This document shows positions 9,541 through 34,966 of a stretch of DNA of 64,000 bases, piece after piece. The notes under the pieces were generated by a model that saw only the letters and a list, made by a program, of their open reading frames with translations, was not told where the DNA came from and did no database searches. A program made the translations under genes and the position numbers. Source of the stretch: Podarcis melisellensis (taxonomy: Eukaryota); assembly GCA_964234715.1 (NCBI GenBank), contig OZ174277.1; one strand, given 5' to 3'. Within the stretch, counting starts at the first letter, position 1, and every line of letters starts with the position of its first letter.

Positions 9541-9627
9541 TGTATCTCCAGTCCCAGAGTGCCCTTCTGCAGTTTGTCTCACGATACAAAATACCTGGAG
9601 TCCATGCCACACTCAAAAAATTACCTG
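9541..9627 (+). CDS. T2-like gene exon (0-0): [29 protein letters not shown]
   Basis: Branch-point-like TACTGAC 9505-11, then a T tract and AG at 9539-40; donor CTG|GTAAGG. Confidence 0.7.
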
Positions 9628-12600
9628 GTAAGGTACAGGTCTCAGCTTGCTCTTATTATTGTAAGTGGATGGTTTTAGACTATGTTATAAGGACTAGAAA
9701 GTACCCCAAGAAAGATTGCTGTCTTTTTCTTTAGAATACCCAAGTGTTCTCTTTTATGGGATGTTGGTTCTGTATCTGTCACTGCCAGCCACATACGGTA
9801 GAAGCGACTAATGTGAAAGTGAAGTACCCTACAGATCTGGACTTCAAGCAGCCAGAAGCCAGAAACGAGTTTCTGGAAGTCGCCTTGGTTACTTAGTTAG
9901 TTTATTATAATCACACATCCAAAAGCATCCCAAAGCAATTCATGTATCGAGAGGTTTCCAAAAGCAATTTACAATAGTGAAATGTGAAGTGCCTAAACAT
10001 ATTATATAAAACATTACAGCCATAATGTACAAAAAGTGTTCATCCGCAGAAAAAGTAATCTGAAACACAATATATCTGCTTGCTCAACACAAGATGAACA
10101 CCAGTATCACTGAGCATTGAAAGCAATTAAATCCTTTCTGAAATTCATGGGCATTAAAGACTTCTGTGTATCCAGACAGCAAGCACAGTATAGCTTAACA
10201 TTGATTTCAACTTTCCCAGGCCTCTCACCAGAAGTACTTGGAAGGACCACAACTTCCAACTGTTTCCCATTGTTAATATCTGTTCAAGCCTGCCTACTAC
10301 CCCACGATTGTTTGTTAGCACTAGGAAAATTATAAACTTGAAATTTAAAAATTGGCTACATAGCTGTTGGCAGATATCTGCTTTAAGTTGCAGCATCACT
10401 AAGGAGTAAACAGTGGGTAAGACTCTGACTTTTATGCAGATCTTCTTGATGATCTGCTGCCCTTATGGAGATTTGTTTTGTTTTGTTTTGTTTGAACTAC
10501 AAATTGATCTTAAACAGCTACTCACATCTCTTTGTGAAAATGCAATTTATCTTCAGGAACTAGCTCTTAATCTACATATCTTAAAGTACTTTCTCAAATG
10601 CAGATTTTCACTTTTGGATACATAATAGGAATACATGTCATAACCATGGAGAAAAATGACTTTCAGTTCAAAAGTAGTGTATGCATGGATACTATATATA
10701 TTATCACAATTTATCGTTACTGTACGTGCAATTTTCTCTAATGGCCTGTTTCCCTGTATGCTATGCTATGTTCTGTTACTGAGTTGTTTAATTTGCTTGT
10801 GGGTATGTGGCAACTTTAACAGATTCCTTGCCAATTCCAAGAAAGTAGTCCTGTTAGTCTGTAGCAAGAGACCTTTCATTCATTGTTGAAGGCCCTGGCA
10901 TTCAGTTTGAATTAGCCTTATCCTCTATTCCCTTTTCCCTTTTCCTCTTTTATGAAGAAACCCTTTCTGGGACCCCACGTTTAAATTCTTCCCTGGTCTC
11001 CTTGCTGGCCCTAATAGGACCAACTTGGCCAGTTAGCCCTGATGATCATTTGATGTCTACTGACTGGGTTTTGTCCGCCCCCCCAAATGACCCCTGAATT
11101 TTTGAATTTTATTGATATTGATGCTGCATTTTATGTTGTATTTTATGCTGCTTTTGTCACATTTTAATCAATGTTTTATATTTGCTGTCAGCTGCCCTGA
11201 GCCCGGTTTTTAAACCGGGAAGGGTGGGGTATAAATAAAAATTTATTAATTTTTTAAAATTGTTTAACTCATTTGCTTCCAACTCACTCACTGCAGAGAA
11301 TGAAGTAAAAGTAGCTGAAGAGATGTCAAATATATTCACCTTCTGCAGAAAGAAAAAGAAATTTACACTCATGAGAGCCGATGAAGAATTTATAATAACA
11401 AATCCAATTCATTCACTTGTTTTATTCTAGTTATTGTCTGTTTTAAAGGGGAAAACAAGTAAAGCTACTCTGACTGATTATATTCATTTTTAAATTTGTA
11501 AATAAAAGTTTCTTTGAACAAATGCAGTTAAAAAAGGATTACATATTGTAACTTCTTTGACTGGGGTTTGCTTTAAACCAAGACAAACTATAAGCTGTAT
11601 GCCCAAAACCAATATTTTAAATCAAATTGTATTTGCTTTCACTTAGAAGCCACTTCTGTATTTAGCACACAACATAAAATGCAAATCCTGTTAAATTGAC
11701 AGGGATCAGATATATCCTGCTAATGTGATGGCCCTTAATCCCACAGTGGGAGTAGGACGCTCTTGTGTCCCTGCTTTTTAGCTAATAGATATGCCATAAA
11801 CTGCAAAGAAGACTAGAGGGAAACACACAATTCAGCAATATGCTTCTGGTTTCATTACAAGCCTTGCAAAATCCAGTCTAACCAGCAGTTTCTGTCCACC
11901 ATAAATAGCATATCCAAAAGTATCACAGTTCCCATGATTCAGTATCTGATTAATTCGAGATGTGATACTTGATAAAATAAACCATGTTAGATTTGATTTT
12001 GGTGCTATCCATATGCCTCTCTCATTCTTTCTCATTCTCTCCTAAGATTATAGGGTTGCAGAACGAATTAACTAAACTTGGAATCTTAAAGAACCAACAA
12101 GACAATGAAAACTTTTGGAAACTCATCCAGGCAGGCATTCATGGTTCAAAGCTCAAAGAAAAGCTTCCAGATATAAAGGCAAAAAGCTGAGTATCTTTAT
12201 AATGTTTTCATTTTAGAACAGCTAAAAATGTCTCATCCAAATAGGTAACAGTGTAGATTTAATGAACTTGGTGGGAAGCAGATTCATTCAGATCAGAGTA
12301 GTACCCCCAAGTACACACTTGTATTGAACAACTGCTTTCCCTGATGATGACGTTTTCCTTTGGCAGTCCCCCCCTCCATCAATTTTGTTATCCTAGCTAG
12401 GGGTTTTTTTTTTGGGGGGGGGGTGTTATTTTTGAGATTGTACAACCAAAAACAGCAGAGTCTAAAACCCCACCTGAGAGGGAGCTCCAGGGGGGAAATT
12501 GCAGGCAGGAGAAAAGTGGCCTTCTCCTATCTGCCTGCTCTACCCTAGAAACTGCCCCCTCTAGATTCAACTTTGCAGTGAAACCCACTCACATCATAAA

Positions 12601-15600
12601 GAGCTCATAACGGATAAAAAAGGCAAGCCGAGAGGAAGGCAGTGAGAGCAGCGGGCTCTGAGTGGAACAATGTCGAAATCAAAAGAACTTGTGTCTTCAA
12701 GCTCATCTGCCAGTGATTCGGACAGTGAAGTTGACAAAAAGGTGAAAATGAAAAAACAAGCAGTGCCTGGAAAGCCTGTGAAGAAACAGAAGACTGGTGA
12801 AAGCTCCAAAGGTGCTGCCTCCTCCAAGCAAAGTAGCAACAGAGATGAGAATATGTTTCAGATTGGTAAAATGAGATATGTCAGTGTTCGTGATTTTAAA
12901 GGTAAAGTCCTAATTGATATTAGAGAATACTGGATGTATCAAAAAGGTGAAATGAAACCTGGCAGAAAAGGTATCTCTCTAAATCCAGAACAGTGGAGCC
13001 AGTTGAAGGAACAGATTACTGATATTGATGAAGCAGTAAGAAAACTGTAAAGATGAGCCAAGCAGAAACTCCGCTGTTATAGGTTTAAGTAGTCTTTTTA
13101 CATGGTGGGATTCATTTTCTAAACTACTTGTTTTACAAGCTATTGTATATTTGGATTGCAAAACAATTTTCAAGATGAGTGCTTTTTAAATGTGCATTAA
13201 AAGTGTATTCTGGGGGAAGATGAAAAAAAATAAAAAAATAAAGAGCTCCTAACCCACCTACTCTCAGAAGCCAGAAACATCATAGCCAGACACTGGAGAG
13301 ACCTGTCAGGTATCAAATGGACCAATGGTATCAAATAGTATGAGAAACAGCCTTACTAGAAAAACTAACTGATAAACTGAAACTGACACTGGGACAAATA
13401 GAGGAAGACACCTTCACCCTGGTATGGCTCCCCTTTATCACATAGACAGCCCAACAAGACAGCAACAAGAACTCACCAACAGCATACAAATCAATATGGC
13501 TAACCTGATCCAAAAACACCCACCCACCCCACTCACACATGAAAATAAAGTTCACCACAGCCAATCACAAACAACCACACCCTAGGCCAACCCCAACCTC
13601 TCTCATCACCAAAGGAATACAAGCAAATAGTAAAGAGAACCTGCACAAGCGACGCTGACACAACTCCCCCCCCATCCACTAAGTAGAATAGAAACATCGC
13701 CACCCGACCCCACTCCCAATTACCATGCCCCTTCCACCTCTTTCCCCTTTTCTTCCTAATGTAGTACTAATGTCTCAACAAATGAAACTGATCTGTAGAA
13801 AATGTAACTTGAAAAAAGAGACATTGCACATACTTTTGTAAACCGCGAAATATTTAATAAAAATAAGTTTAAAACAAAACAAAAACAAAACTTTGCAGTG
13901 AAGAAGCAAGAGCAATAGTCATCTGGAAATACAAATTTGCTAGTAATATGTAATACATAACTTAGTTATTAATCACAACGTGTCAACAACAAATGACAAA
14001 AAACAATTTACTTAAATACTTTGTGTTTTTAATTGACAGTGTTAGCTACAAAGTCTTTGCCTCTGGTAACTTCAGCAAGAACCAGTCCAGTCCAGCCTGT
14101 TGATGGCTTTAAAAACAGTAGCAGCCTGAAAAAAGTAAGCAAATACGTGTTTCTGTTTATAACCTTGGATTTCTAAGCACTCTACTTTATGAGGCTTCTA
14201 ATTATAGTCAGCAGTCTTAACTCAGCTTGATGGGTGGGTGGGAGATTTCTCTGATAAGATGCTTCATGCGATGCTTAAATAGGCCTTAACTTTTCTACAT
14301 ATCTGAATGAAGCTACATTTTATAGTCCTGTAAAATCTCTGGCTTCCTGAACTGTGTTGATATCAGGTTGTGTCCTGTTGCTTTCAGTAAGTCTACTTTA
14401 AGAAGGATTCAACCTATAATTCACAAGTGACTCCCTCCAGGCTAGAAGATTTCCCTAAAATGCCCATAAGAGTTATTTACTCCTTTGATTCAATATTCTA
14501 CATTTTTATAAGTAGATAACTCAACAATTGCTTTCATGGGGTAGGGAGCACAATTGTACACAAAACACCTTTTGTGCAGGGTGCTCTGCTCAGTATTTAA
14601 CTTCTTAAACTAGTAGTGGTGGTACAACCAGCTTGGAAGCATCTTCCGATCACTAGATGCCTGTGTGTTTTAGGGAACACCTGTCTACACAACTTCTGGT
14701 GCCCTCTCTTGTTCATTACCTGGTATCAACAAGAGGTTCCGTGGCTAAGTCCTGCTTGAACCTTGATTCAGATTAAACCCTTGCTTTCCCTTTTTCCTCT
14801 GTGAGACTAGAACTGTTCTGCAATGGGTACTGTGGCACAGAGTTTCCTGTCAGAGGTGAGGAAACAGGAAGTATTTGCTGTGGTTAGGATGCAAAGGGAC
14901 AGGTGGTGTGCTAATGCCATTTGCTTCCACCATGGCGCTCAGGAGAGTTCCTTAGTTTCCTTTTCTGATCACAGAGCTTTGCACTGCACAAGAATCTGCT
15001 CCTTCAAGAATCCCTGTTTTTTAGGAGTGGTTTGTCAGGTGCTAGGTAGAGCTAAAGTCAAAAGTGGGGTGCGGTGACTGGGAGCTCTGAAACTATATTT
15101 CATCTTTGGACTCTCTCAGCACAACCATTTGGATTCTGCCTGATCTCTGCAACATAAATGGGAGATTTTAAAGAGTCTGGTGATAAAATATAGGTGGTTT
15201 TTTTAAAAATATGCTCAACATCTGAAAAGCTTTCTGGCTCATTTAAACTGAGTTCAGCTAATACTATATACAGTGGTACCTATGAGACCCTATGAGGAAC
15301 GGCTAAGGGAGCTGGGCATGTTTAGCCTGGAGAAGAGGAGGTTAAGGGGTGATATGATAGCCATGTTCAAATATATAAAAGGATGTCACATAGAGGGAGA
15401 AAGGTTGTTTTCTGCTGCTCCAGAGAAGCGGACACGGAGCAATGGATCCAAACTACAAGAAAGAAGATTCCACCTAAACATTAGGAAGAACTTCCTGACA
15501 GTAAGAGCTGTTCGACAGTGGAATTTGCTGCCAAGGAGTGTGGTGGAGTCTCCTTCTTTGGAGGTCTTTAAGCAGAGGCTTGACAACCATATGTCAGGAG

Positions 15601-18600
15601 TGCTCTGATGGTGTTTCCTGCTTGGCAGGGGGTTGGACTCGATGGCCCTTGTGGTCTCTTCCAACTCTATGATTCTATGACCTCTGGTTATGAACTTAAT
15701 TGGTACATGTGAAGATGTCTTGTGTGAAACATGTTGTGCAAAACTGTGGCCCAAGTCACATCCTGGAGTTTCTGAGCTCATGGGACAGCAGACAGAGATA
15801 CCACAGTCGAGAACTCAGCTTTCTTTAAATAACATGTACTTAGGAGTTCTTAGGAGAGAGGGTGAGCATTGAAGAAAATGTTAAAAGAAGAATGAATGAT
15901 CCAAACTTGCCTTAGACCCTTAACCATCTCCCCTTGCCCTTCTCCATTTAACTGTGTACTGTTTACCAGCTGTGCCCTGAAAAAAGGATGCAGGGATGGC
16001 TGAGCTCTTCACACTTCTGTGTAATGATCACATCATGCTTCCAGTCTGCTGTACCAAGCAGTGTGCTTTGGGCAAGTTGTCAGGTTCCTGGATCTGGCTA
16101 AAGGGTTAATTTGCAACTTGAATTGTTTACTCTGGTATTTATTGCATTCTCTGAATTCTAACAAAAGGGGAGACATGATTTTGCAGTCTGACATGCCATT
16201 TATCATTATGAGCTTTGAGGTATCTAATCAAGTTTCTAAACTTTCTGGATAACTTTTGACATTTTAGATGACAGTTACCATGCTGAAGTAAAAAGGAGTA
16301 CGTCAATATTACATGCTATGCCTCAGTAGGAACTTGGAGATTCACCTCAGTCTGTTCTTGGTGGGTGCTTAGAGAACATGAGACTCTCGATGCCCCCTGA
16401 AAGGTGACCAAGGAGCCACGATCTGGTGTAAGATTGAAGATTGACAGCATATTAAAGAAAGCCAAACAGAATAAAGGTGGTTGAACATTAGCATATAATG
16501 ATCATGTCCTGAAAAAAAGTCATAATCATAAGATACTTTCTGAGAAGAGCAAAATTTTCAAGGTCACCACAAACTGGAATGCTTGATACCATTTCTGACA
16601 CCACAGTTGTATATAGAACATGGCCTTAGAGGAGCTTGGAGACAGTCATGTAGCCCATCAAAGGGGCACAATAAACAGGTTGCAGTTTGAGGGAGCAGAT
16701 CCTGTATCTCACTTCAGCTGCTGGAGTTGGTAGCATTACCTCTTTATCCACCCCAACCCTGAATGCATCATTCACCCTCCTCCTCCTCCTCCTCCTCCTC
16801 CTCCTCCTCCGGGCTGTTAAGTTTTGGAATTTGGAGGGGCATTAGGGTAGGTTTGGAAAAGCAGCACTTACCTCTTTTGCTTCTCCCCCTGAGGCCTCGG
16901 GGATGAATATATAGTCGGGGAGTGAAAAAGGAGTGAATTGGCAAAGCACTCTCCATTTCCCACCCTTGACAGGCGCTAAGCTGGTAACGTAAGAATTCTT
17001 GTAGTGAATTGGTTCACGTAGCCCAGCATTTTGCTTCTGAAAAGTGGGCCATTGGATACCTTTGAAAGCCCACAATCAGAGCATGAAGGTGATATTGGAG
17101 ACAAATAGATGATTGCCCCCAGCCCCAGGTGCCGGGAGGCGTATACACTCTGAATATGGAGGTTTCTTTTTAACCATCATTCCCTCTGTTTCTGCTGTTC
17201 AGGTTGTGGGTGTTTTGCTGATGTAGCAAAAGAGCACCACTCAACAAGGAGATACTGGCTGAAGAACAAAAATATTGAGGGAGGAACTAAGGGAGGGGGG
17301 ACTTGACAAATAGCCCAGTGGCCAGAGAATGCTAACTGTTATGGGGAGGCTGGGAAGAGGAATTGAGTATTTTGGAGGAAGGCATGGTTGTCTGTCTGGA
17401 ACAGAAACACTTCATACTTCAACATTTTCCTGCAGGTCCAAAATGTTACGACTAACAGCTGTTGACAAGACTTAATCCTTCATAAATTTGTCTTGCCCTT
17501 TAAAGATCTGTCTAAGCTACATCACCACATGTTCATGTACTGATATCCATAAATTAATTCCATGCCAGATTGGGATCAGTAGTGCTCCTCATTCCTGAGA
17601 AACTCCCAACAAACCCAACGACATTTTTTAGAATGCGAAGAAAACGTTTTACTTTGGGTCTGAAACTGAAATCTCTTTGGGACTTGCCTTAGAAATTCTT
17701 TCCTGCAGGTACTTCTGGGTGACTTCTGTAATTGTTTCCCAACGGAGGGAGGATTAGTGGAGATGTCACCAAACCGTTAGGAGGGCCTTGTTAGCCTTTC
17801 ATCCTACCCCAGTCAAAGGTAGGCCACATGGGCCCCTGTTTGCCTGGCCTAAGACAAATATATCTTGGCTGAATCCTTATTACTGTGTGTCTGAGGGAAG
17901 CAGGGGAAAGTGTTCACAGATACGTGAGAAGAAAATAAAATGGAGAAATGGAGACGCACCCTTTATATTGTTGGAATGCCTAAGGGCCTCTTGGAACTGA
18001 ATTCAAATCTTATTGGAGATTACAGTGTGATAGAAAGAGAGCTAAGAGCAAGAAATAAATAAGGCAAGCTATGTGCATCTAGCTTTCAGAAAGGCTTGGT
18101 AGAGCTTCTGCTTTGCACTCAAAGTTTCCAGATTCAATCCCAGACATCTCCAGGTGGGGCTGACAGAGAACCCCCATCTGAAATCCTGGGGAGCTGCTAT
18201 AAATAACGCTGACCCTAGAGAGACAAATGGTCTTACTCGCTGTAAGGCAGCTTCCTATCTAGCCAAGGCGAGTAAACCAAAGGAGGCCAAGCGATTCTAT
18301 GAACTGCTCCACCTTTATATTTTCAACAACTGGAATCATCATCATAATAAATCTTTTAATTCGGTTTGTTTCTGAAATTGTGGCTTTCTGATATGTGCTG
18401 AATTCGGCATCTTGACATTGCTCATTTTTGAAAGAATTTATTCTTTACCAATAACTGTAGAGGAAGAAAATAAACAGAGTAAGCATTGCAAATAAAGTGA
18501 GTTTTTTTCATTTAGGAAACAAACCATTCTTTCCCATGTATGCCAAATAATATTCAACTTCTAAAGTTGCTCTTTTGCTTCTCTTTTCATTCTACATGTG

Positions 18601-21600
18601 TTTGAGTTGTTAGACTCCTACTAAGGGGCTTAGAAGCTCAGTGGCAATGCTAGTAGCTAATTTTGGCAAGTCTTAGCCATTGACTACAGGCTGGCTGCTG
18701 TTGGAAATGTAATGTTTTATTAAGTGCAGCCTGATTTGACCCAGCAAAGCCTTTCTTATTCTGGGCAAAAGCTGGACATAGAGAGCTCCTACACCTGCAG
18801 AATCTTCTCCACCTACTGCAGTATTTGGTACTGCTTCGCAACAAGCAGTGAAAATGTTCACTTACTGGAACCAATGACTTGTAACCAGGTCTCAATAACT
18901 ATTACACCAATGGATGTCTCTCTCACCCAAACTGATTCTCCTCAAATCCCTGTTGACCCCAGCCATTTATGCACATTATAGACAAAGGAGGCTGAGGAAA
19001 TCTTCTCTCCCCAAGTCGTTTTAGGGTTATTTACTGTATGTGTGTATACCTGTTTTGTCATTTTCCCTCTTAATCCAAGTACAGTTAGCCCCTCTTCCTC
19101 CTCTCATTCAGAAATATTATTCTTGAGAAATCTGGCCAATATAGCACAATAAATCTGGTGCAAGTCTGAGCTTAGTTTGCATTTTGGAGCCTATTTTCTA
19201 TTCTTTCCTATGTGGTTCACCATCCGAGCCTGTGGGACTGGCTTTTAAAAGCTATAGCACTCATTCAAATGTCAACACACTCTTGCCCAGTTTTTGAATT
19301 TGGTTTCTGCTACTTGTATGATCAATTTGTAGGTTGTAGTTAGAGTGATGGACCCGGGTTCAAATCTCCACTAGCTATGAACCTCATTGGGTAATTTTGG
19401 ATCAATCACTGTCTCTTAGTCTAACAGGATTGCTGTGAAGATAAAATGGGGAGGAGGGCATCCACGCTCACTGCTTTCAGCTCACTGGAGGAAAGGCAGG
19501 ATGTAAATGTAATAATAATAATAATACTTTGTTCAAAAAGACAGAAAAGAATAGGTGTCTATATCTATTATTATATTCAGAGCATCTGTTGTGTTCCATA
19601 TTGCACTGTCATTTGCTGAAGTGCAAAGTAATTGTTAATTAGATGGTTAAGTAGATCCCAGCTAACCTGTACATTTCAAGTCCTAGACCGTGTCAGTTGC
19701 TCACATATCTAGGTAGCTAACTAGATACACAAACACACACAAACTGTGGAAGAGTAGTTACACTGAGAAGTTTAAATCAAGTGCCAAAAATCCATCTAAA
19801 CAACTTTAATAAAAAAATATTTAAACTGGTGAAGTGTAGATGGGAACTGGGAGCATCCTCGGTTTTGTCTGCCTTGTGACCTAGGGCCTGAACATTTAGT
19901 TGTGAAGGCATCACTAATGATGTGCTAGTTCTCAAGGATGTATCAGAGTGCTGCAGCTAACACCCGATAATATCGCTCACTCCAGTGCTGGCACACTTTG
20001 ACTGCTTAGTGCAAGAATCCTAACTAAAACAAAACAAGTGGTCGTCTTCTCATAAGTATCATATCCACTCACCTCTAGAAACAAAAGAGCAAGCAGTGCC
20101 TTTAGATATTTGATTTGGTTTTGTGGGCTTGCTTTTGTCTTGACCGTTGGCATTCTTTTGTAATTTTGAAATGAGGTTTGGTTAGTTTTGGACTCCTCCT
20201 TTTATAAAAACCTTTCACTGTATATGATGTATAGAGCCATATTCCTTTCTTGCTGGATCAAAGCTGTGCTGTCTTTGTACCCAGTTCTTCATTGTCCTGT
20301 TGTTCGGAACAATGATTCTACTGGAAATGGTGTAGGGGAGACTAGATTTGATCATTTACTATGCCACTGATTTCTTACCTCCAAATTCATACATTATAGA
20401 TTGTTGTTGTTGTTAATTGTCCACCCTTCATGGTGAAGGCTTTACCCTAAGGTCCCAGCATGGGTTATAACACTAAAAAAACCATAATTAAAAACTGTTT
20501 AAAACAACAATTTAAATCCTTTCTTGCAACTCTGCTAATATTCTTGTTGTGTTCTTCAAGGAGACTGATAAGATCTGGTATGAATTTTCTTAAATGACCT
20601 CCTTTTGTTCTTCTCCTGGCTCCCATTACAAATGAGTTCACCTTGCCCCCTTCTGTGTCTTCACGTCCATCTCTTCCTGTGTTATTCTCCCCCTAACCAC
20701 GGGTTATTAAGCTGTATTATTAAAGTGGCTTTTTAAGCCAGGATCCCTGGTTCAAATGTAACACCAAGCTGAGATTCTTTAAAAGAACTAAACTCATCAG
20801 AAGTCCTCCCCGGCAGGGTGGAGGAAAGTATATGAGCCCAACTTTTGACTTGGGTTCATTGGTGTTCATTCACATCGTGCTGAGCTATGCTTTTTGTATA
20901 ACTGGGCCAGTATCAACTTTCAACTAGCTTTTTCTCTAACATTTTCTTTAGCTCTTGCTTCATGTCTCCCTCTCCTTGAAGGAGTCCAAGTATTTCAGCA
21001 TCTATTCTTCTTCTTCCCCTCTGTTCTGGGAGGTCTATTCTAACTCTGTTTTTTCATCTCATTCTGTGTAAGATAAGGTTAGCGTAAGCTAAAACTAGGC
21101 CTCTGTCTCCGTGTCTCCAGCTTTCTCAACATTTTCTCTTGAATGGCTTACCATAATCTCAGTTTGAATTTAGACAATAATACATCCCTCCTTATACTTT
21201 TCCATCACTACTCCAAATATCACCATTCCCCAGTCTTCCAAATAAACACAACTCCGGGAACCCATTGATGCATCCTTCTTTCTTTTCCTGTCTGTCCTTG
21301 TCCAGTGTTGCCATTTCTTCAAAATTCTAAAACTTTTCTTCTTTTTCTTTTGCATCTGTTGCAAAAACAAAACTTTTTTTTTAAAAAAACTCTTCATTCT
21401 TCGGCCATCTCTTACCTGAACAGTTACCATCTTCATTTTCACATTTATCAGATATTGGTGGGTTGGTGGGGTTTTTTTTTTAATTAATTCAATTATTATT
21501 TATTATTATTATTATTAATACCCCGCCCATCTGGCTGAGTTTCCCCAGCCACTTTGGGCGGCTCCCAATCGAGTGTTAAAAACAATACAGCATTAATTTA

Positions 21601-24600
21601 AATTACATGCATCACAACATGATGAGCTTGGGTTGTTGTGCATAGGTTTTGTGTAACTTCTGGGTTTCTTTTAACTCTTATTTGTAGAATGTGAGGTGGG
21701 GAGGTAGAAGGAAGGGATGGAATATGGGATGCTTCTCAAAGAGAAGTTTATTGTTTGTAGAACAACAGTAAAATAGATGGCCAACATGTGGCACACACTC
21801 AGGAAGACTAATATCCCATCCTCTCTTTGTTCAGCTGTCTTGTGCTTAAACTAAACAATCTGCTGTAACAAAGATGTTTGCCATGGTTCTTGCATGCGTG
21901 CAGAGTCAGGATACAGCAGTCTTGTGACTTAGGAGTTGTAACAGGAAACCTAGACTTGCGGACTTCATTCGTGAAACATTTTCCAATAAAGTTGTTTTTT
22001 GCAACTCAGGAGAAATTTGTTTAAAAATTCAACTAGTTCCCCTGAGTTACAATTGTGGCATCACGGTTTGGGATGGTATAAGCAAGTCAGGAACAAACTA
22101 GCTGCACATGTCAGCCTTTTTGCAAAATTTGATACTGCCCTGATTTGTTTATAGCAGTAGTAATAATATAAGTTTGCATGGCATTCATTAACTGAAAAGA
22201 AAACCAATCTGTGATAGTCACACATGCAATAAAATCTTTGTTTTGAAACCTTAATTTTTCTCGCAGTCTTGCTCAGTTTATTCTTTCTGTCTCACTTACG
22301 ATCGCTGCCCTGATTTCACGGAAGTGCAAAGAGACCTATCCAATTGGCCTTGCCCCTTGTTAGCCATATTCACATATATGCTGCAGCCATGTGGGAGCCA
22401 CCATGGGAAAGTGGCCGCCATGTGAATCGTGGGTTGTGTGAAGAGGGCTAATACATCTCGCCACATATCTCATCCTTCCTCATGTTCTGTAGGAAACGCT
22501 GAAAGAAAATGCACGACTCTCTTTCACTTCCTTTGTTCCTGTTTCCTTCTAACGTTTTCCCAAGGCTCTGGGAAGTTCGGATGCTTTATTCCCAATACTT
22601 AACACCTGGGCCTTTCACTTTTGTGCATTTTTACACCAAATATCCAGAATATTAATAAAGTGATGAAAAAGTGTAGTTTCTACATGGCAATTACCAGGTA
22701 ACATTTCCCTCCATCAACTGGAAGAGTGCTTAAAGCAACAAACTGGAAGTGGGGGAACTGGCACGTAGCAGAAGTGTTGGTAATAGCACTGGGCTAGGAT
22801 AGGTGCTACAGCCATTTTATCACCTCGAGCCGATCGCCACTCTGATCCAATTACTGCTCACGTGGGCCGATTTCTCCTAGTTGTTTGGGCTAGCAGCAGT
22901 CAACACTGGAATTCCCACTGCCTCCATAGAGATTGTGAATTGTTGGGTTCTATTAGTCACATGTCCTGAAATAACCAATACTCCCCCCCCATATCTATCA
23001 ATTTAGTTTGACTGTTTTCATTTGCACCAGGGCTAATTCAAATTTCTATTAAAACACATCACTTTTCCAGGCAGAGTTTGATATATATATATATTTGCAC
23101 TATGAACAAGAAGAGCTAATTTATCTGATTTTTTTTAATCCCACCGTTCTTTCTGGTCATTTCATATTTTTTATTGCCTTCTATAGTTTGCTATGGAAAG
23201 GTGAATCCTAGTCACAGTTATAAATATAGGAATCCATTTGAAAATGTATCTTGAACACAGAGTCTGTGTAAGTCCTGTGTATAAATCTCTCCCCCAACAT
23301 CCTTAGATGGGAAAATAGAGTAAAATCACTGGCATATAAGAACTCAGGTTTCATTCACTGGAAAAGTAAGATCTAGTAAATATTATTATTGTTCACTTTA
23401 TTTTAGTATGCTGCTTCATATTTTAGAAAATCTCAGAGTGGTTGACATTACAGCAAAAAAATAACATTACATAAAAATACAAATTCAGCTGCTAATCATC
23501 ATTATCCACATTTTTAATAATATAATTAAGTAGTAAATATCTAAACAATGTACATAAGTCCATATATTTTTATGCTATAGAAACAGGTGTTCCTTGACTG
23601 GTCTAACGTGTTACAAGGTTTAGGATTATATTAATGAAAAATAAGATTTATCCCTATTTATTGATGAATAGAGTCTTCATTCTTCCCCGTCTGCCTTTTC
23701 AGCTAAATAAGTTAAACAATAACCATAAATCGGTGTTGTTCTCTGTTTTGGTTATTTGTAGTTTTCAGCTTTGAGGCAGGTAAAATTTTAAAATACTATG
23801 CATTTAATAAATTCATCATAAAATTGTGAATTCTGTGTGTGTGCTGAGCAACAGAAATCCAGCATTTGATTCCCGTCTTATTTTCATACAGAGTACAGAT
23901 TCTTTGTTGCCGTCTGTTGACACCTGCCAGTCTCCAGCTTTTCATGAGAGGAAACAGGTAAAGACCCAGCAAGAAACTGAACAGATGTTTTCAATGGTAG
24001 GTGAGAAAACCTCAGGCCTTCCTGTCCTTTAAAAAGATTAGATTAGAACAGGTGAGTTATACTTCTGGTGCTCTTACAATTATTCTCCTGGCATTGCAAA
24101 ACAGTTCAGTAGCTTGCGTGGGAACTGTGTTCAAAATACTCCATTACTCTGACAACAAATGCACAGTTTTGTGACATATTTGGTACATAGAAAGTACCAG
24201 ATTATAGTCTGAGCAGCAATTCCCTCTGTCCGCCAGACATTTTTTAAAAAAATATTCTGTCAAAAACTGTAATTCACTGAGGACTACTGCTTTTGTCAGA
24301 ATTCCATCTAGAGCCTGTTTCTTATGTTCTTTATTTAGGGCTTCCTGTCTCTAAGAAATTCCACAATTTTATCAGATCAACATTGCCCTCATTTCCCATC
24401 AGTTGACATTGTAGCTGATGACATATGCAACGTGCTCCCATAGCAGCACAAGGGAAGGGGGCATCTGAGAAAAGGTTACATACCTTGCTCCCACATTGCC
24501 ATTTGCGTGCTGCTATTGGAGTATGAATGCATCCATGTGAAATGAAATAGGATGAACCAACAACTATAAATGTTTTTGGGTGCAATCCTATTGTTTCTAG

Positions 24601-25891: not shown

Positions 25892-28800
25892 CCTATTTTT
25901 CTCTTGGTTTTTTTTTTTAAAGACTGTATTCTGAAATAATATGTTCTGGTGATAACACTATTACCAAAACATTTTTAAGTCACTGGTTTTTCATTCACTT
26001 CAGTGCAGTTCAGAGGAGTGCACACTCAAGATGACAGAGGGTCTTTTTCTTTTTTTAATTTGCCACTGACTCATAGCACGTAGCAGTTGCGGTAAAATCA
26101 GAACTACTTTTCCACTGGGAATTAAATGTGAGCAGACCGATTCAGCTAAAGCTAATGGTTATTGTGAATCATTGAAAGCCTTCTAAGTTAGTTCCTCTGG
26201 CTTTAGTAAGGCCTTCAGTATAATTCCACACATTAACTTGGAAGTAACTATTTTCAGTGGGTCTTACTGCATAGTAAACACGTTACAACTTCATTCAGCC
26301 TTAGTCACAACTAACTTTATTTGGATTGTAGGAGAGTTGTGTTAGGTCTTCAGAAGAATAGATTTTTGCCTGCCTCCATGGCTGCTTCCAGCAGACAGTG
26401 ACGCCAGCCTAAACAACTTGGAGTTATCATTTGATTTAGACATTTGCAAGGTGAAGTTAACGGGAAAGTAAAAGTCTTCGCTGTTGTGTGACTCCACTTC
26501 TATGTCTAATTAGAGTCTCAAAGCATTTTAAAAAGCCATATAAGGTGAATCATCTCAGTAAACAGCCCTTGACGTGAAAAACCAACACCTTTGCGGTGGG
26601 GAGGATACCTTTGCAAACAAAGAAAGGTGGCTTTCTGCAGTCAGCCCTTTTCTCTAGCAGCACAGCATGGGGTGACGGAAAAATCATTAACAGGCTCATC
26701 CTGCACTTTTCCCTTTTCCACACCTGCATACCACCATCCCCAATGCTGTAGCTTTATGGGCCATGAGGAGGCAGATTTGCCGCCATGAAACTCGGGAGCA
26801 AGCTGACAGCTGCAGAACAGCAGACACTAAAATGTAAAGGAGAGGAAGGGGAGAGATCACCTTTGAAGTCTACCAAAAGAAAAAGGGAAAACAGAAGGAC
26901 TTTGACCATTTCTTTTTTTAATTATCTGTCTCAGGTACATTAAGATATGAGCCACTAGGGCAGGGTTTGTTTTGTTTTGAAATACGCATGTTACAGTTAT
27001 GCGTGGATTCATAAGACCCTTCAAAATTAAAATTAAAATGTGCATTTAAAAATTATCATAGACTAGTGAGGGAAATGAGCCTTTTGAGCTAAAAACAGGT
27101 TGCATCATGGGGTGAAAATAGCAGCTGGGGGATTTTTGACAGGAAAGTGGATCAGGAGCAGGGCTCTGCAGCTGTATATCCTTCGGAATAAAAGTGAACG
27201 TATTGAATACATTTTTAAAAAAACACAGGATTAAAGCAATGTGTAGCTTGGTCTGTAGACGTCTGAATATTTTCAACTCCTATCCTGGGTGATAATTAAT
27301 TTACCTTCTTTCCCTCCCACCCCATCACTTTGAATAATGTCACAGAAGTAGATAATAGTTGCAGTGCATTAACCTGAAATTATGAGTCACACACCTCAAT
27401 AAGAAAGACTGCCTTATCAATGAACTCAAGGTTGGCCAATATTAAGATGTCTTATTTCCATGGGTGCCCTCTATTGGTTTACTGCAGAAAAGCATTCACC
27501 AATAATTATTGAATAGTTACAGATAGGTAGCCGTGTTGGTCTGCCATAGTCAAAACAACAAAAATTCCTTACTGGAAGGAATTTTTTTTGTTTTAATTAT
27601 TGAATAGACAGCTTCAAATATTCTTGAATGCTGCCGGAAGTCAAGTGATTTACTGTTTTATTCCACAAGAGTAATTACTTTCGTGTACTGCCTTGCCTAA
27701 CAGTTTATCTTTCTTACATCTTCATAGACTTTAATGGCTTTTTAATAATAATAATTTAAAAAAACAACCGTCGGCAGAACCGAAGAAACAGCTGTGTTTA
27801 TTTGTCACAGAGCAAAAACAGAAAAGAAAAATGGATCATATGGTTGCCTTTGTAATCTCTTTTTTGTGGTGGGGGTGTTTCCCCCTTGCTTACAGGTGGG
27901 TTTCTCCCCCAATTTTCCTCCCACAGTTGCTGCTTTCTTGGCTTTCTGAAGTGCAGAAAAGACTTGGAGAGCCATCTAGGACTCAGCAGGTGGTGAGTTC
28001 TTTCCTGTAATCTTTATCAGGCTTGCCCCATCCCACCTCTGTCTTCAGAGGAAGATAGTAGTAATAGTTGTTGTTGTTGTTTTGAGGTGGGGGGGGGAGA
28101 CACGGGTTAGTGGGGGAAGTCCTATTTATTCTCTGTCTGGAGAAGCCAGAGTGTTACAGTATGGAGGAGAATTTCCGAAGAGTCAAGCTCAAGCTGAGGC
28201 CCAAAGGAGAAGAAAGGGAAGCCTTTATTATGATAATAGCGATGAGCTGGGTAAAAAGAGCTCTCACAATGGGGCTAGGCTACTGTGCCTTCAGCTGCTT
28301 CCTGCTAGGAAGATTCACAAGTCTCCTTTACATAGGATGATTAGAGAACTACAAAGTCAAGGGGGGTGGTGGGTTTCACTCTCTTATCTGGAGCCCATCC
28401 AGCTTAACAGTTCTGATTCTCCAAGACTGCTGCTTTTATCAGCCCAGCCTGTGAGGTTATATTAAATGATAAATGTTTGGCACTCAATATAGTGTCATTT
28501 ACTCTCCCAACCCCCTCCCCCTAAAATCATGGGTCAGATACCAAAAAGCAAACAAAGCCCTTTGCACTACAATTGATTTTGGTGGGACTTTATTTAACAG
28601 CAGCAAAACTAGGACGCAGGCATTGATACTGTTTAGTTTGCCTAATTGTCCATGCACCCTTCATTGTAAAGAGGGGTGAGGGGAATTAGTTAATTTTGGG
28701 GAAGTTTGCTCCTTAACCATGCCAGGGGTGGGTCAACATTGCCTTTCTTTCAAAAGGTTCCCCTCTTGCATTTTCCTCCAGGATACTCAGCCTCCTCCTA

Positions 28801-31800
28801 AAGGTGTAATCAGGCTTCCTAATCAGTTATGTAGATAGAGAGCAGGTTTGGGGCTGCCTCCCATTTAGGACTATAAATATCGGCTTACATTGATTACCTT
28901 TTCCTGTAGGTCTTTCTTTTGAAACCCTTTTATATTATTACTGTTTCATCGTTTAGATGATTTCAGACCGCAATGTTTCCCAAGGAATAAGAATCGAGCA
29001 TCATATGTATTGTTATATAAGCATGTGGGTCACAATAATAGATTAATATTGTCCCTGCATATCAGCTCAAAGTCTTGCAGTGATTTCTGCATTAATGGAT
29101 TCATTGGATTTTATGCAGTGAGAGTGAGAGACAACAGTTCTTCCTCTTTAAGTCGTTGAAAAGTATAGCAGATGTTTTGTTTTGGCCAATTTTTCCTGTT
29201 GAAATTCAACTGGACGGACAAAGTGGGCCTTTCAATCATACAAGGACAGAATAAGATTTCTGAAATTTTTGGTAGAGGGTAGAAAACTATTGCATTTTAA
29301 AGTAATATACATATGACATACCTGTCTTTATTATTTTGCTATTCAGGTCAATAAAAATGTTAAGTAGTATGGTAAAATACATTGACTATCTTGCACACGG
29401 TCACACTTGGTGGGTGCCACTGAATGAATGAAAGTCTTCAATGGAGGTCTGAAGTTTTGAAAAGGAAGCTACTTCAGCCAAACCCTGTTCTGTTAGTACG
29501 CCACTGACATCTTACAGTGCCATCTTAACCACGTCCACTCAGTCGCATTGAATCCAATGTTTCTCGCTCCCAGGTTACTGGGGTTACAACTGCAGCCTTA
29601 AATAAGTTTTGAATAGGAAGTTATCTTAGGCCCTTTGTAGTGGTATTGCTTTAACAAGAACATTATTTAGTATAATAATGAAATAGCACTTGAGAATGTT
29701 CAAAACACATCACGTTCATTATCTTGCATTCCTTACAAAACTGCCCTGAGAGTTTGGTTGAGATGAGAACCAAGGCTGATAAATGGTGGTTGACCTTTGG
29801 CTTTCTAGTCAGTTGGAATTGGGCCAAAGTTGTGATATGCTTTAAGCATATTCTAGAATCTAGACTTGGTCAGTATCTTTGTAGACCAAACGTTGATGTT
29901 ATCCCAAGTGCTTCATCAGCCTACATGTTAAACAGAGAAATTGGCTGGGGAGGGGGGGCAAGAAAGAGAAATGCAATTAAGCGTCTCAAAACTTCCCAGC
30001 CCCACAATTTACACTGGGGATAAAAGAAAGTACTCTTCATTTTATCCATTTCCATTGCCTCAAGGAGGTGATGTTTATCTGCACAGAGTTCCTGACTAAG
30101 GAAAGTTTTGTTCCTGAGAAAAGCTTGCAATACAATTAAGGATGAGATGAAGGAGCCAAGCCGTGAATGATCTACGAACAATTTATTCTGGAGTACTGCT
30201 GACATTGGTGGCTTTACTGTACATATGGTTGTAGAGCACATATATTTATAGATAGAATTGGACTTTGCCCATGAATGCAGCTGTAAGTTGTATGCCTGCT
30301 GCTATGCTCACTTTGGGTTGTGTCAAATGCTGCTGTTCCGCTCATGCAAGAAACTCCCACTTGTGCGATGGGACTTCCCCTCTCTCTCCACCACCAGCTC
30401 CACACATGTCCTCAAAATCTTCTCCACAAGGTTGGAGAACCCTCCAGATTTTGGGAGCACACAGGGGGAGGAGAGGAAGGGGAAGTCTTGATGTGTAAGT
30501 AGAACTCTGCTGAGGCAGCTCTGCATACAACCCTGTGACTCTCCCCCGCTTTCTTTCTGAAAGCTGCACCCCCCCCCTCCTCAATACTTCAAGGTCTCCA
30601 TACAGGTCATCCCTCCAGGACATAACATCTCAGTAGTACTGAAGCAGGCTGCAACCACGGTGTCACTTTCTGTCGGTGGCCAGTGATGATATTCCCATTC
30701 TTGTGGTGCTTTCCAGCATTTGTAAATACTTTTAGCATTCCTCTCCTTTGCTTATCCCTGAGCTGATTGAGATGGAACAGAGCCTTCAAAGCTCATTCAC
30801 CTAACACCATTCTACATGTAGCACCAAGTGAACAAGCCCTGAAGGATCATTGGGCTCACATGCTCTCTTCTTCTCCCTTTGCACACTATATTTCTCTCCT
30901 TCCTTTCCTGGTTTATGTCACACCATAGTCCATAATTCCATTGGAACTGGCAAACTCTGGAAACTGCTTCACAGAGACAATTCTCATGCATTCCTTATGT
31001 CATCCATTAAGTAAGGCTGAGGCTCCAAAAAATGAATGTGCAGATTGTTGGGATGTGATTACATGCTAGGAGATGATATATTTATTAGATATTTTCCTTC
31101 CTTCCTCATGTTTGTGAGTTCAGCAGAGTGCCACCCCTTTGCAGCTTAAAGGGAAAGCTTAGATAGGCTAGTGTATAAGCTCTAACATGCTTTTTTATTA
31201 TTACTGACAGAAGAAAACATGCAAACAAAATCGGAAATATGAACAGCAACTTCACTCATTGCACCATATATATTATTTTTCTCTTCTTAACATGGCATTA
31301 TCCAGGAGGTGAGTTTGGTAATAACTTTGCACAACATAGAGGCAATTTGTCTAGTATACCACTTTATAAATGGCTTTTATGACTCTGTGCTTAAACTACC
31401 ATGCTGGCAAAGCCTATTGTAGTTTTGCCAAAGCTAAAAGAAGCCATTTAAGGATCACGGTAAAAAGCAGTTGTGATTTCATGCAACTAAATCCCATAAG
31501 TTATCAAAACTTACTTTGGAATAAACCTAGCCAGATTTGAGTTTATTATGGAAAACAATGCTGTCTGTTCAAACAGTTGTTGCATTAAAAACTTTCAAAA
31601 GAGGCTTTAAAAATGTATAGGCAATGAATAACAGAATTTTTAGAGGCTATAAGTCTTTTTTCCAGAAGAGTTAGGGTGAAGCAGTAGCAACCGATTCTAC
31701 CAGCAATCATCCTAAGAATTCATAATCTGTTTTCCTGAAATGATGGTGAAGACTGTTACGGTCTCAGCTTGCAGCCTTAATAAATATGTAAAGTAATGTT

Positions 31801-33688
31801 CATTCAGTGGAAGTAAGCAATGAAATAACAAATTTACAGTAGTTTGGCTTTGGCTGAACTTGGTAGCCAAAGCAAAAACCATAGTTCTCTGTCCTTGCTC
31901 CTTCTGTTTCTGAGGTTTTTTGGCCTCACAGCTGCTGAGGAAGGTCCTGCCTGGGCAGCAAAGAGTTTGCCCATTTGCTTGCTTCTTTGCTAAATAAATA
32001 AAGCCCCTCCTCCCTTGCCCTGGACAGGCCTGATACATTCTCATAATAGTAGATCTCTCAAAGAGATTCTTTGGACAGTTTCCTTTTTGAATAGTAGCAG
32101 GTGGGATTGTGTATAATACATAGAATGAATGTTTATATGTTTCCTTTTAGCAGCTCAACGGATTAGACAAAAATTCATTGCACAGCATGTGGGGTCCAAT
32201 GAGCTGGGGATCACCTTCACTAAAATGAACTTCAGCCTGTTTTATTTTTGTGATGCTCAAAGTTTTTAGCAAATATATTTGGCTGACTGGCTGTCTTGGT
32301 GAGCTGGCCACACTTGAGGATAGCCTCCTTATTGCAAAAATGGTGGTTGGTGGCCAGTGATACGTATATTGAAGCCCACATCAGTTCACAGGAACAAGAA
32401 GGTACCGTTCAAATTAAAAATGACTCTTCTTGCATTGCATTAGCCACATGAAAGAGAGAAAAAGAGAGAGATGGTGCCAAGAAACATTCTTAGGATCAGT
32501 TGTGGAAGGATCAAACTCTAATGAGATACTTTGCGGGCAAAATGTGTAACTCTACTGTGCCCCAGAGCAACCATTGGCTTCCTTGCTTTCATGCACACTT
32601 AAAACAACTATAATGCATTGCCACTAAATCAAGTAGATTGTGGGTGGGAACTAAAAGCAGCTAGGACAATACCTGCTCTGTTTTTAAGAATCTATTATCC
32701 ATGTTTCTTTTCTTGATTTGCTTTTTGTTTGGTGCTATCTAGGCTCCTAGAACAAAACGGACAGTTTACAGATGTCAGAACAAAGCAGAGTGTGCATGAT
32801 CTGGTTAGTAATCACCACCATCAGCTATGAAAAATGTTGCATTGTATACAGGCAAACATTATTCGATATGCCTTTGATTTGAATTAGGCCCCTGTCTTTG
32901 TTTATGCCACTTGATACTTTATGTTGTTTAACCTAAAGATTATAACACTAAAGTTATTTCTTACCTGTGGAGTTTTAAGAAATAACTCCCCAAAGTGTGT
33001 TAATGGCATTTAGCACTTAAATGCACCAGTGGATATTGAACTCAGCACTGAATCGCTGTTCAAAGAGCACACTTTACCCGGGATATAACCACATGGAAAC
33101 TCTGTATTTAGGAAAATAAGGAACCTACATTTACTGCAGGAAATATGTGCTCAATAGGAAAAATCCTAGTTCTAACCAAGTAAGGTGGAGAATGCCAGGA
33201 GCCATGCTTGCTCGTGTATTTTAGCAAGAAAGACACAGTGTTTTGCCGCCTGAGGCGAAATGGGAAGGCTTTGCTCTGAACGTGCACCACACGCTGTCTT
33301 CCCCCACTTGCCTCCCCCGCCAAAGCCTTGCTTACATGGGCACAGCTGTAGCTTCTGGGTCTGTTTTGCGAGAGCCCTGAAAAATGTCACAGCAATCTTG
33401 CCGGAACCTGGATCCTGTTGCAGCTGATTCTCCTTGCCTCTCCGGCATCAGTGCAGCACGTCCCAGAGGCATCCCTTGGATTCTACCACCTGAGGCAGAT
33501 GCCTCAGTCTGCCTTATGGATGGGCTGGCCCTGTTTGAGATTGGTCCGCAATTGAAGCAGCAGGGCACAGCTGACAAGAGTAAGAGTTTTCACTACCAGT
33601 AGGTGAATCTTGGAAGAGAACCAGAAAAAAATGCCTGAGTGTATTAATAACTACTACAAAATGATAATGGGAGCCATCCCGATCCTTC

Positions 33689-33733
<45 letters not shown>

Positions 33734-34966
33734 CAACCTGACACTGGAGGTTGTGTGTGGTCAACTGTATTAAGTTATAAGTATCCACAGTTCTCTTTTA
33801 AGGTTCAAATAGCAGTAGGTTTGAGTTTTGAATTTAGTAAATAGGATTGTTAAATTTCATGTTAGACTCATTTTTAATCATTTTAATTGCTTCAAAATGA
33901 CATTTTTAAAAAGCCTTGCATTATACTAATTTTGTTTTCATTGTCTCAAGATGAATTATTTGTATCCAAATTTCCATCAACGATCTGGAATGAATCAGGG
34001 CAACAGCTTAATAGAGGAAAACCTGGTTCCATCTTTAGTAAGTAGAAACCTGCAGGAAATGCATTGCAAGGACTCCACCAAAACATTAAGAATTTTGAAA
34101 GAAAACAAAAAGATGTTAAAGCAACATAAAGATAGAAGTGTTCTTGAAATGTGAGTACATGTAACCTGTAGACTGAGGCTTGTGTCCATTCAATCTTTTA
34201 CCTGGTAGATGGATATCACAACTTAAATAAAGTTGTAATTTCTAATAATGTTATTTTCAGTTTCCCTGATAGAGTTGAAACTCAGAACATCTCTACCTTT
34301 GCCCAGCCTGAAATGGTTCCTGTGCCTTTAACTCTGGGAGATGTTGCTCTCTATGCTCAAGTTGTGGTAGGTTCATACTTCTTTCTTCCTTTCCTCTATC
34401 GAGTCCATTACTTACTATGATGTCAGTAATTCACTGAACCTGGTTTATCAGGTTCATCTAAAAGAAAACCTTATTGGAAAGTAAACAATGGGTCTTTAAT
34501 GTGAATGGGCATTCTGTAAAATAAAAAAATGCAGTTTTCATACATCTCTTCTCAATGCTACTATAATTCTGTACAGACCAAATTTGCAGTACCTGCCAGA
34601 CATTTCAAATTAATCTAATCGTGTATGTGTGTGTAATTTTTTTTTTGCAATACAAGTCAATTAGGCCTCTTATCTCAGAGGTAAACAATAATTTTTTGTG
34701 AAGTACAACATGCTTTTTCCAGCCATTTATATAGAGGATCAGTACTACAATTGATGGCATTGTAAAACAGCTGTTGTTCAAGCTTATATTACTGTTCATG
34801 CGCATATGCTATTTTCTTGGTTGTTAAATTGATCATACCATATGGCGTAATTTATTAATATACAGCTGAACTGTACATTGTTGCTTTTTAGGAAACCACA
34901 CCATTAAACACATATTGGACAAATTATGTTGACAATGACTCCATCATCAACAGTGAAAAACAGTAA
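9541..34966 (+). CDS. Uncharacterised multi-exon gene upstream of TBXT (candidate T2 / 'brachyury 2'-like); join(9541..9627,12047..12185,14040..14134,23892..23996,27927..27992,31211..31308,32743..32803,33951..34150,34261..34366,34892..34966); 1032 nt, 343 aa, 5' incomplete
   Basis: Ten segments with polypyrimidine-AG acceptors. Eight of nine donors are GT; the donor at 12186 is non-canonical. Phases chain 0-0-1-0-0-0-2-0-2-0 into one stop-free frame ending [23 protein letters not shown] at 35343-52. The T2 identity is inferred from synteny only. Confidence 0.75.
10870..11250 (+). mobile_element. L2-type LINE 3' end; boundaries approximate
   Basis: Ends GCTGCCCTGAGCCCGG...GGGTGGGGTATAAATAAAATTTATT, typical of squamate L2-like tails. 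Confidence 0.55.
12047..12185 (+). CDS. T2-like gene exon (0-1): [46 protein letters not shown]
   Basis: Long pyrimidine tract ending cctaag|ATT. The phase-compatible donor is the atypical A|GCTGAGTAT. Confidence 0.7.
12583..13888 (+). mobile_element. 5'-truncated L1 LINE 3' end, interrupted by the SUB1 retrocopy
   Basis: Joined across the retrocopy it reads [20 protein letters not shown]...W(stop)ETALLEKLT...F..VWLPF, an L1 ORF2 C-terminus pattern. AATAAA 13856-61 and an A-rich tail follow. TSD AACTTTGCAGTGAA at 12569-82 and 13889-902. Confidence 0.85.
12612..13237 (+). pseudogene. SUB1: Processed SUB1 (PC4 coactivator p15) retrocopy with intact ORF 12670..13050 (126 aa)
   Basis: Intronless [24 protein letters not shown]...[26 protein letters not shown]...AVRKL, with short UTRs, ATTAAA 13196-201 and an A-tail at about 13223-37. 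TSD ATAAAGAGCTC(A/C)TAAC at 12596-611 and 13238-253. Confidence 0.93.
14040..14134 (+). CDS. T2-like gene exon (1-0): (M)[31 protein letters not shown]
   Basis: ttttaattgacag|TG; donor AAA|GTAAGC; open frame. Confidence 0.65.
15282..15679 (+). mobile_element. 5'-truncated, young CR1 LINE
   Basis: Uninterrupted [23 protein letters not shown]...WNLLP...FKQRLD (CR1 ORF2 C-terminus); 3' end TTCCAACTCTATGATTCTATGA. Confidence 0.92.
22360..22451. mobile_element. Small PIF/Harbinger-like MITE
   Basis: Ends TTAGCCATATTCACATA / TGTGTGAAGAGGGCTAA are 14/17 complementary, including TTA/TAA ends. Confidence 0.5.
23892..23996 (+). CDS. T2-like gene exon (0-0): [35 protein letters not shown]
   Basis: cttattttcatacag|AGT; donor ATG|GTAGGT (alternative donor GTAG|GTGAGA 4 nt later). 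Confidence 0.65.
25821..25888. repeat. Compound (GA)n-(CA)n microsatellite
   Basis: Direct reading. Other simple repeats: (CCT)n 16777-810, (CA)n 33692-730, 47647-677 and 50400-422. Confidence 0.95.
27927..27992 (+). CDS. T2-like gene exon (0-0): [22 protein letters not shown]
   Basis: ttttcctcccacag|TTG; donor GTG|GTGAGT. Confidence 0.7.
31211..31308 (+). CDS. T2-like gene exon (0-2): [32 protein letters not shown]
   Basis: ttattactgacag|AAG; donor GAG|GTGAGT. Confidence 0.8.
32743..32803 (+). CDS. T2-like gene exon (2-0): (R)[20 protein letters not shown]
   Basis: tgctatctag|G CTC; donor CTG|GTTAGT. Confidence 0.8.
33951..34150 (+). CDS. T2-like gene exon (0-2): [13 protein letters not shown]...[10 protein letters not shown]
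   Basis: ttttcattgtctcaag|ATG; donor AAT|GTGAGT; coincides with ORF 33951..34154. Confidence 0.8.
34261..34366 (+). CDS. T2-like gene exon (2-0): (I)[35 protein letters not shown]
   Basis: gttattttcag|T TTC; donor GTG|GTAGGT. Confidence 0.8.
34892..34966 (+). CDS. T2-like gene terminal coding exon: [24 protein letters not shown]
   Basis: gttgctttttag|GAA; TAA at 34964-66. Confidence 0.8.
   Translation, partial: ETTPLNTYWTNYVDNDSIINSEKQ

Follow-up and report, generated by a model that had tools for sequence, protein, structure and literature searches.

Genes unrelated to a developmental transcription factor can be interleaved with its long-range enhancers, and such bystander genes in genomic regulatory blocks are a concept from the conserved-microsynteny literature. 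On conserved microsynteny, Irimia et al. (2012) is cited in PMC10584899, which also gives Rennebeck et al. (1995, 1998) as the T2 papers. Mouse T2, or "brachyury 2" (Gene ID 21331; A0A338P791, 393 amino acids, aa), is the described gene closest to the one treated here; it lies 5' of Brachyury (T, or TBXT) and is known mainly from an insertional mutant, which is now thought to be regulatory. The notochord enhancer TNE "coincides with exon 5 of T2", and a 37-kb deletion (-8.5 to -45.5 kb) contains TNE, TNE2 and more candidate enhancers (PMC8722351; PMC10651091). T2 is regarded as possibly absent from human (PMC3626178). The present work deals with a stretch of 64,000 nucleotides (nt) from the lizard Podarcis melisellensis (assembly GCA_964234715.1, contig OZ174277.1), referred to as the window, and with its interval 9541-34966, in which an initial annotation, made from the letters alone, had proposed a hidden ten-exon gene upstream of Brachyury as a candidate reptile orthologue of T2.

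With a probability of about 0.9, we regard this interval as the 3' ten coding exons, together with a 45-nt alternative exon, of the lizard orthologue of mouse T2, a non-T-box, apparently single-copy, tetrapod-wide coding gene placed head-to-tail 16 kb upstream of TBXT. Exon borders were taken from contigs of RNA type, from alignment of annotated orthologues (local tblastn, by which all ten exons were placed) and from direct reading, and the exons are called E1 to E10 in their order on the plus strand. E1 (9541-9627), the fourth coding exon of the full gene with 29 codons, was placed by alignment of gecko, turtle and ostrich proteins, is bounded by AG and GT, and differs from P. raffonei at 2 of 87 bases. 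E2 (12047-12185) is the best conserved block (IIGLQNEL...FWKL...KEKL), matches mouse T2 aa 62-107 and has an A/GC donor (the slash marks the exon end), and E3 (14040-14134), again between AG and GT, was found by tblastn with the gecko protein and by blastp with ostrich. E4 has two donors, both GT and both preserving the frame: the short form (23892-23957) is used in lacertid RefSeq models, and the long form (23892-23996) is that of Anolis, gecko and turtles. E5 (27927-27992) and the in-frame alternative exon of 45 nt or 15 aa (28782-28826), which is present in isoform X1 of P. raffonei, are followed by E6 (31211-31308), in which none of 98 bases differs from P. raffonei, E7 (32743-32803), carrying the LLEQNGQF block, E8 (33951-34150), the longest and least constrained coding exon, and E9 (34261-34366), with the PLTLxDV block. 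The last exon, E10 (34892-35348), is coding to 34966 with TAA at 34964-34966, and its 3' untranslated region ends with AATAAA at 35343-35348, 377 nt 3' of the stop codon.

An AG acceptor was found at all ten exons and the donors are GT except that of E2. On direct reading, a polypyrimidine tract and AG stand 5' of the exons and donors such as GTAAGG, GTGAGT, GTTAGT and GTAGGT follow them; by a rough position-weight score the donors rank in the top 2-5% of GT sites of the window. The chain with the short E4 has 993 nt and 330 aa and the chain with the long E4 has 1032 nt, that is 343 aa and a stop, and neither has an internal stop. The good acceptors, the phase-perfect frame of 343 aa and the AATAAA behind it, all described in the initial annotation, were thus recovered, and the six peptides quoted there all map to the plus strand where they were expected. 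These ten exons are thus real, and the whole gene, which had been taken to consist of them, has thirteen coding exons and about 450 aa. Full-length orthologues have 452 (P. muralis), 448 (Lacerta) and 453 aa (Anolis), and their first residues, about 118 in number, have no match in the window. Three exons of the P. raffonei locus (10001-10084, 15381-15497 and about 18195-18350) code for these residues; since the window begins near position 18812 there, all three 5' exons precede its first base, the nearest by about 460 bp. Judged from this alignment, what the window carries is the 3' ten of thirteen coding exons, the last two-thirds of the gene.

The E2 donor reads A/GCTGAGT in the window and in P. 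raffonei, and A/GTTGAGT in Anolis; because the sequences are equal in length, the GC-AG intron is due to a T-to-C substitution and not to an insertion of one nucleotide. GC-AG introns are a normal minority class. The T at +3 of this donor is unusual in both lineages. After the 45-nt alternative exon, both Podarcis genomes have CAG/TTATGT, and no placement of the junction yields a GT..AG intron.

For transcription, four small runs of RNA type, stored as assembled contigs, were aligned to 29401-35400; three of them are from organism A (studies P1-P3) and one is from organism B. Joints with GT..AG introns at 31308/32743, 32803/33951, 34150/34261 and 34366/34892, which set both ends of E7, E8 and E9, were found in all four runs of the two related organisms. 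Single contigs cross four or five exons and extend to about 35330, and contig depth is 6-90 on exons against about 2-9 on introns. The type of these runs is guessed, and they behave as complementary DNA (cDNA): a lizard genome could not be assembled to such depth from libraries of 90-120 Mb, and joined forms without introns are what cDNA gives. Two distinct loose contig ends precede E6 and match 27963-27990 and 28794-28823 exactly, which indicates an upstream exon ending at 27992 and the alternative exon 28782-28826. In the five exons with contig-set borders, one frame is open for 179 codons to the stop and the other two have 20 and 24 stops; by chance such a frame would arise with a probability of about 2.5e-6, and 20000 shuffles yielded no open one. 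The gene is therefore transcribed and spliced in close relatives, and for the last five exons the spliced RNA to which the initial annotation had looked for support is at hand.

The gene is not new in kind; it is an unnamed member of a known, neglected family and is predicted in sister species. RefSeq predicts the same gene, as "uncharacterized protein LOC…", in Podarcis, Lacerta, Zootoca, Anolis, snakes and geckos, and the word hidden had to be given up since congeners already have the prediction. The E8 peptide (66 aa) is 100% identical to aa 217-282 of XP_053238354 ("uncharacterized protein LOC128410738", Podarcis raffonei) and also matches LOC proteins of Rhineura, Vipera and Eublepharis, and a gecko protein is nearly identical to E1 and E2 as read in the initial annotation. 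Profile searches scored the best 8000 candidates (most shared words) with a length window. With a profile of nine squamate proteins they led to turtles, gharial, ostrich, emu, the frog Bombina and three rodents, all named "uncharacterized", and with a profile of rodent proteins to about 40 rodent loci, including "brachyury 2 [Mus musculus]" (393 aa, E 6e-111), rat brachyury 2 and Mus spicilegus Brachyury 2. Among these candidates there was one named locus per species, save fragmentary models, a pattern that may reflect a single orthologous locus. Two mole-rat models are fused with SFT2A, a known neighbour of the gene on that side. Within the same best 8000 candidates, the mammalian family members were rodents only and those of birds were palaeognaths only (ostrich and emu), a range that may reflect real losses or the scope of the search.

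By BLASTP, the Lacerta protein and mouse T2 align collinearly as far as their last residues, with 27% identity over 346 aa (E 2e-29). When exon peptides of the window were compared one by one, E2 was 63% identical to mouse T2 aa 62-107 (E 6e-21) and E6, E9 and E10 matched mouse T2 in the same order after it; eight or nine of the ten peptides were matched in turtle and ostrich and six in frog, again collinearly. Lizard and mouse have intron positions in common at ...YL/IIGLQNEL and ...SR/(R/K)LLE. No T-box domain (PF00907) was found by Pfam in any exon or in full-length orthologues, while TBXT exons in the same window reach 7e-31, and membership in the T-box transcription factors is thereby ruled out despite the name "brachyury 2". 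From the homology, the collinearity, the shared introns and the lack of a T-box, the label of T2 orthologue stands. An ancient, uncharacterised gene, as had been proposed, is borne out by a family that extends over frog, turtles, archosaurs, squamates and rodents, and the collinear exon-wise similarity hoped for in other amniotes was found there and in frog as well.

In an alignment of 30 species, three conserved blocks (IIGLQNEL...FWKL...KEKLxxIK; LHxMYxxSLxNMxxSxRLLExNGQF; PLTLxxV...VVEAK...YWxNY) are separated by fast-evolving, indel-rich linkers. The ten exons differ from P. raffonei at 14 of 993 positions (1.4%), against about 5.5% in aligned flanking DNA. Outside coding sequence, the window and the P. 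raffonei locus agree at 94-96% of positions, as expected of a lacertid closely related to that species. Seven of the changes are synonymous and seven nonsynonymous, and omega, the ratio of nonsynonymous (dN) to synonymous (dS) divergence, is 0.26. The 296 codons aligned with Anolis give dS 0.60, dN 0.27 and omega 0.45, and in the same comparison the proportions of nonsynonymous (pN) and synonymous (pS) differences are 0.09 and 0.38 in E2 and 0.05 and 0.47 in E5. These comparisons indicate moderate purifying selection, which is concentrated in three short blocks; the dN/dS below 1 that the initial annotation had anticipated was thus obtained at both distances.

Three other explanations of the chain were weighed against a T2 orthologue. 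An interval overlapped by 160 open reading frames of at least 40 aa, in a sequence where good-scoring GT sites are not rare, might let ten open stretches between the common AG and GT dinucleotides be picked by chance; half of the borders, however, are set independently by the RNA-type contigs, all ten exons are matched by annotated orthologues, and the conservation of exons exceeds that of introns about fourfold. Contig joints, frame statistics and orthologue matches together refute this explanation, and the probability that we leave to it is negligible. Another possibility is a once-coding gene in decay in Podarcis, E1-E3 being lost from the mRNA and the product being shortened or non-functional. 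Such decay would agree with the change of the E2 donor from GT in Anolis to GC in the window and P. raffonei, with the P. raffonei RefSeq isoforms that skip E1-E3 and with the TT donor at the alternative exon. We nevertheless find it very unlikely, for E1-E3 are intact and differ from P. raffonei at 9 of 321 bases, under the intron rate, they are included in the models of P. muralis, Lacerta and Zootoca, a GC donor belongs to a normal class, and no exon has a stop or a frameshift.

The transcript may also be a long non-coding or enhancer-associated RNA of the TBXT upstream region whose frame is incidental. For RNAs upstream of Brachyury this general idea was raised by Kemmler et al. (PMC10584899), who note annotated long non-coding RNAs there and propose that the T2 mutant phenotype is regulatory, and it would suit a protein with no known domain, a largely disordered model and an E8 in which pN (0.34) is near pS (0.31), that is, almost neutral against Anolis. 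Against it, the frame is open over 330-450 codons in frog, turtles, a crocodilian, birds, squamates and rodents, omega is below 1 (0.26-0.45) with E2 and E5 strongly constrained, intron positions and phases are conserved, and the chance of the open frame, 2.5e-6, was reckoned on half the gene alone. We regard a non-coding transcript as extremely improbable. Several of the observations just named, the near-neutral E8, the GC donor of E2, the non-canonical donor of the alternative exon and the skipping of E1-E3 in P. raffonei isoforms, also weigh against the T2 orthologue as we describe it, and others stand on the same side. The runs are from relatives of the window's own species and their RNA type is a guess, and for the splicing of E1-E4 the evidence is the RefSeq models for P. 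muralis, Lacerta and Zootoca. Adjacency to TBXT was read directly in this window, and that in mouse was taken from the literature with an assumed T start; according to neighbouring gene calls, TBXT lies outside the 10-kb flanks of the mouse, Anolis and P. raffonei loci, and it is likewise outside those flanks in turtle and frog. Pfam gave nothing above the cut-off for each exon peptide or for full-length orthologues, a sequence search of the PDB with mouse T2 and the squamate profile gave no solved relative, and the AlphaFold2 model from an alignment of 30 sequences is of low confidence, with a mean predicted local distance difference test (pLDDT) of 53 and a predicted template modelling score of 0.21. 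The relation to cilia and testis considered below leans on two gene lists and on weak feature neighbours.

With regard to linkage, the T2 stop at 34966 and the TBXT start codon at 51582 are 16 kb apart on the same plus strand. TBXT exon 1 (51582-51788) begins with the ATG and has a Pfam T-box match of 3e-06, and exon 2 (53744-54010) has one of 7e-31. The mouse T2 coding range is chr17 8,591,228-8,640,987, which, with the start of mouse T that we assume, presumably corresponds to roughly -62 to -12 kb. The 37-kb deletion from -8.5 to -45.5 kb therefore lies almost wholly inside mouse T2, given that assumed start. A non-T-box T2 on the 5' side of T that overlaps the notochord enhancer region, as the initial annotation had stated, agrees with the coincidence of TNE and T2 exon 5 (PMC8722351).

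Five non-coding matches stand in the same order in the T2 gene bodies of lizard and mouse; mouse positions are those of the locus L001. One in the intron 5' of E1 (window 2947-3084, mouse 13813-13945) is 75% identical to a mouse T2 intron (E 1e-18), and it is followed by matches at 9400-9461 (mouse 26809-26870), at 16008-16112 (mouse 31061-31163) and at 17718-17955 (mouse 34050-34276); the mouse counterpart of this last one is directly 5' of mouse T2 exon 5, at the published position of TNE. The fifth, in the intron before E5 (26706-26878, mouse 46570-46739), has 68% identity to mouse over 184 bp (E 1e-13) and 80% to Anolis over 547 bp. In the element 2947-3084, the T-box half-site TTCACACC (3029-3037) is invariant in two Podarcis genomes, Anolis and mouse. 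The wider element 2730-3206, which shares 79% identity with Anolis along 483 bp and contains a 139-bp core that is 75% identical to mouse, is a candidate auto-regulatory element of TBXT, and its mouse counterpart presumably lies about 58 kb upstream of T, on the T coordinate that we assume. Enrichment of T-box motifs was also tried, and the count of TSACACCT in the window (3 copies against 4.4 expected) is meaningless; the copy at 3030 is the sole one in a deeply conserved element, and the copy in E4 is not conserved in Anolis.

The window and Anolis have about a dozen further blocks in common, of which one reaches 94% identity over 144 bp. This block, at 19874-20017 in the intron between E3 and E4, is conserved between lacertid and Anolis far above the level of exons, and no mouse match to it was found. 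Mouse T2 exon 5 (L001 34363-34479) has no protein similarity to lizard E4, its positional equivalent, and the lizard match to the TNE flank sits in an intron, 6 kb upstream of E4. Mouse T2 exon 5 may thus have arisen from enhancer-flanking sequence.

In the mechanism that we propose, TBXT enhancers between and beside the exons of T2 would keep this gene linked to TBXT. The collinear elements and the mouse enhancers in the T2 body fit with the idea of a bystander, and we think it rather probable that T2 is such a bystander in the regulatory block of TBXT, with the linkage kept by enhancers; a functional tie between the T2 and TBXT proteins is a less likely reason for the linkage. The suggestion in the initial annotation that introns of a bystander gene host TBXT enhancers accordingly gains from the collinear conserved elements and from the mouse literature, which are indirect, and the enhancer role itself stays that of a candidate.

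As to the protein, AlphaFold2 gave a confident long helix for residues 53-118, encoded outside the window, and helices for residues 145-200 (E1/E2) and 276-306 (E6/E7) at pLDDT 70-85, with the rest disordered. The structure prediction that had been suggested was thus obtained, and its result is helical and disordered; a fold search was ruled out as meaningless on a model of such low confidence. The Pfam searches agree with the earlier statement that no known domain is recognised, and RKP_N, which one snake isoform reached at threshold, was taken as chance. Feature neighbours in the ESM Atlas are the orphan chordate families C10orf120, FAM228B, C16orf78 and CCDC60, all below 0.9 and regarded as leads only. 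Rat T2 is among the most reduced transcripts, with a 19-fold drop, on loss of the bronchial epithelium (PMC4339611), and in a gene list from mouse brain T2 is up alongside several genes of cilia or testis type (PMC10894918). That T2 encodes a helical adaptor or structural protein, one of the fast-evolving orphans typical of testis, germ cells and ciliated epithelium, is a tentative and rather doubtful suggestion from these data.

Two other sequences lie within the gene body. An intact SUB1/PC4 retrocopy of 126 aa (Pfam PC4, 2e-23) occupies 12670-13050 in intron 2 on the same strand; this insertion is annotated in P. raffonei as a 122-aa gene (L003 31173-31541), and since it is present in both genomes, it is older than the split of the two species. 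The segment 15288-15680 is a dispersed repeat, of which the Anolis locus has at least seven copies, in both orientations; it overlaps an open reading frame of 111 aa (15273-15608) without a Pfam hit and is probably the 3' end of a retroelement.

T2 has been treated in the literature as a mouse curiosity, and here its frame is found conserved and constrained from frog to rodents. By this assignment, dozens of "uncharacterized" sauropsid genes gain a name, and T2 would offer a clear example of a bystander gene tied to a developmental regulator. Mouse deletions made for mapping Brachyury enhancers also take out exons of a conserved coding gene. An old, constrained coding frame does not dispute the regulatory explanation of the T2 mutant. 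A bolder proposal would be that T2, as an ancient coding gene (at least tetrapod-wide) and neither a mouse oddity nor an enhancer RNA, has had its exons interleaved with TBXT notochord enhancers for more than 300 million years and that its protein acts in cells of the ciliated node, the notochord or epithelia, with some of the enhancers shared. If this were true, part of the T2/T(Bob) phenotype and of the phenotypes of large upstream deletions would be due to loss of T2 protein; we consider the proposal unlikely.

The lizard gene may finally be compared with known systems. LOC128410738 (Podarcis raffonei), LOC114594324 (P. muralis), LOC117043923 (Lacerta agilis) and LOC103280638 (Anolis carolinensis) are the same gene, known by the name "uncharacterized protein" only, and no paper on the LOC identifiers or the UniProt id was found in the searchable literature. 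Between the window and the P. raffonei locus, exons are 98.6% identical and the exon structure is identical, and isoforms of the LOC genes vary in whether they contain E1-E3 and the 45-nt exon and in which of the two E4 forms they have. Mouse T2 is homologous and collinear, has the same place and orientation 5' of Brachyury and shares intron positions; both genes are without a T-box, and the non-coding elements in their bodies are collinear. Unlike the sauropsid and frog proteins, rodent T2 proteins are without the N-terminal coiled-coil part, and they also lack the sauropsid CKLSHDxKYLES block; mouse exon 5, the site of TNE, has no sequence counterpart in lizard E4. With the bystanders of genomic regulatory blocks the gene shares the situation of an unrelated gene that lies among the long-range enhancers of a developmental transcription factor and stays syntenic with that factor, and it differs from known bystander genes in that the lizard elements are known here from sequence conservation.

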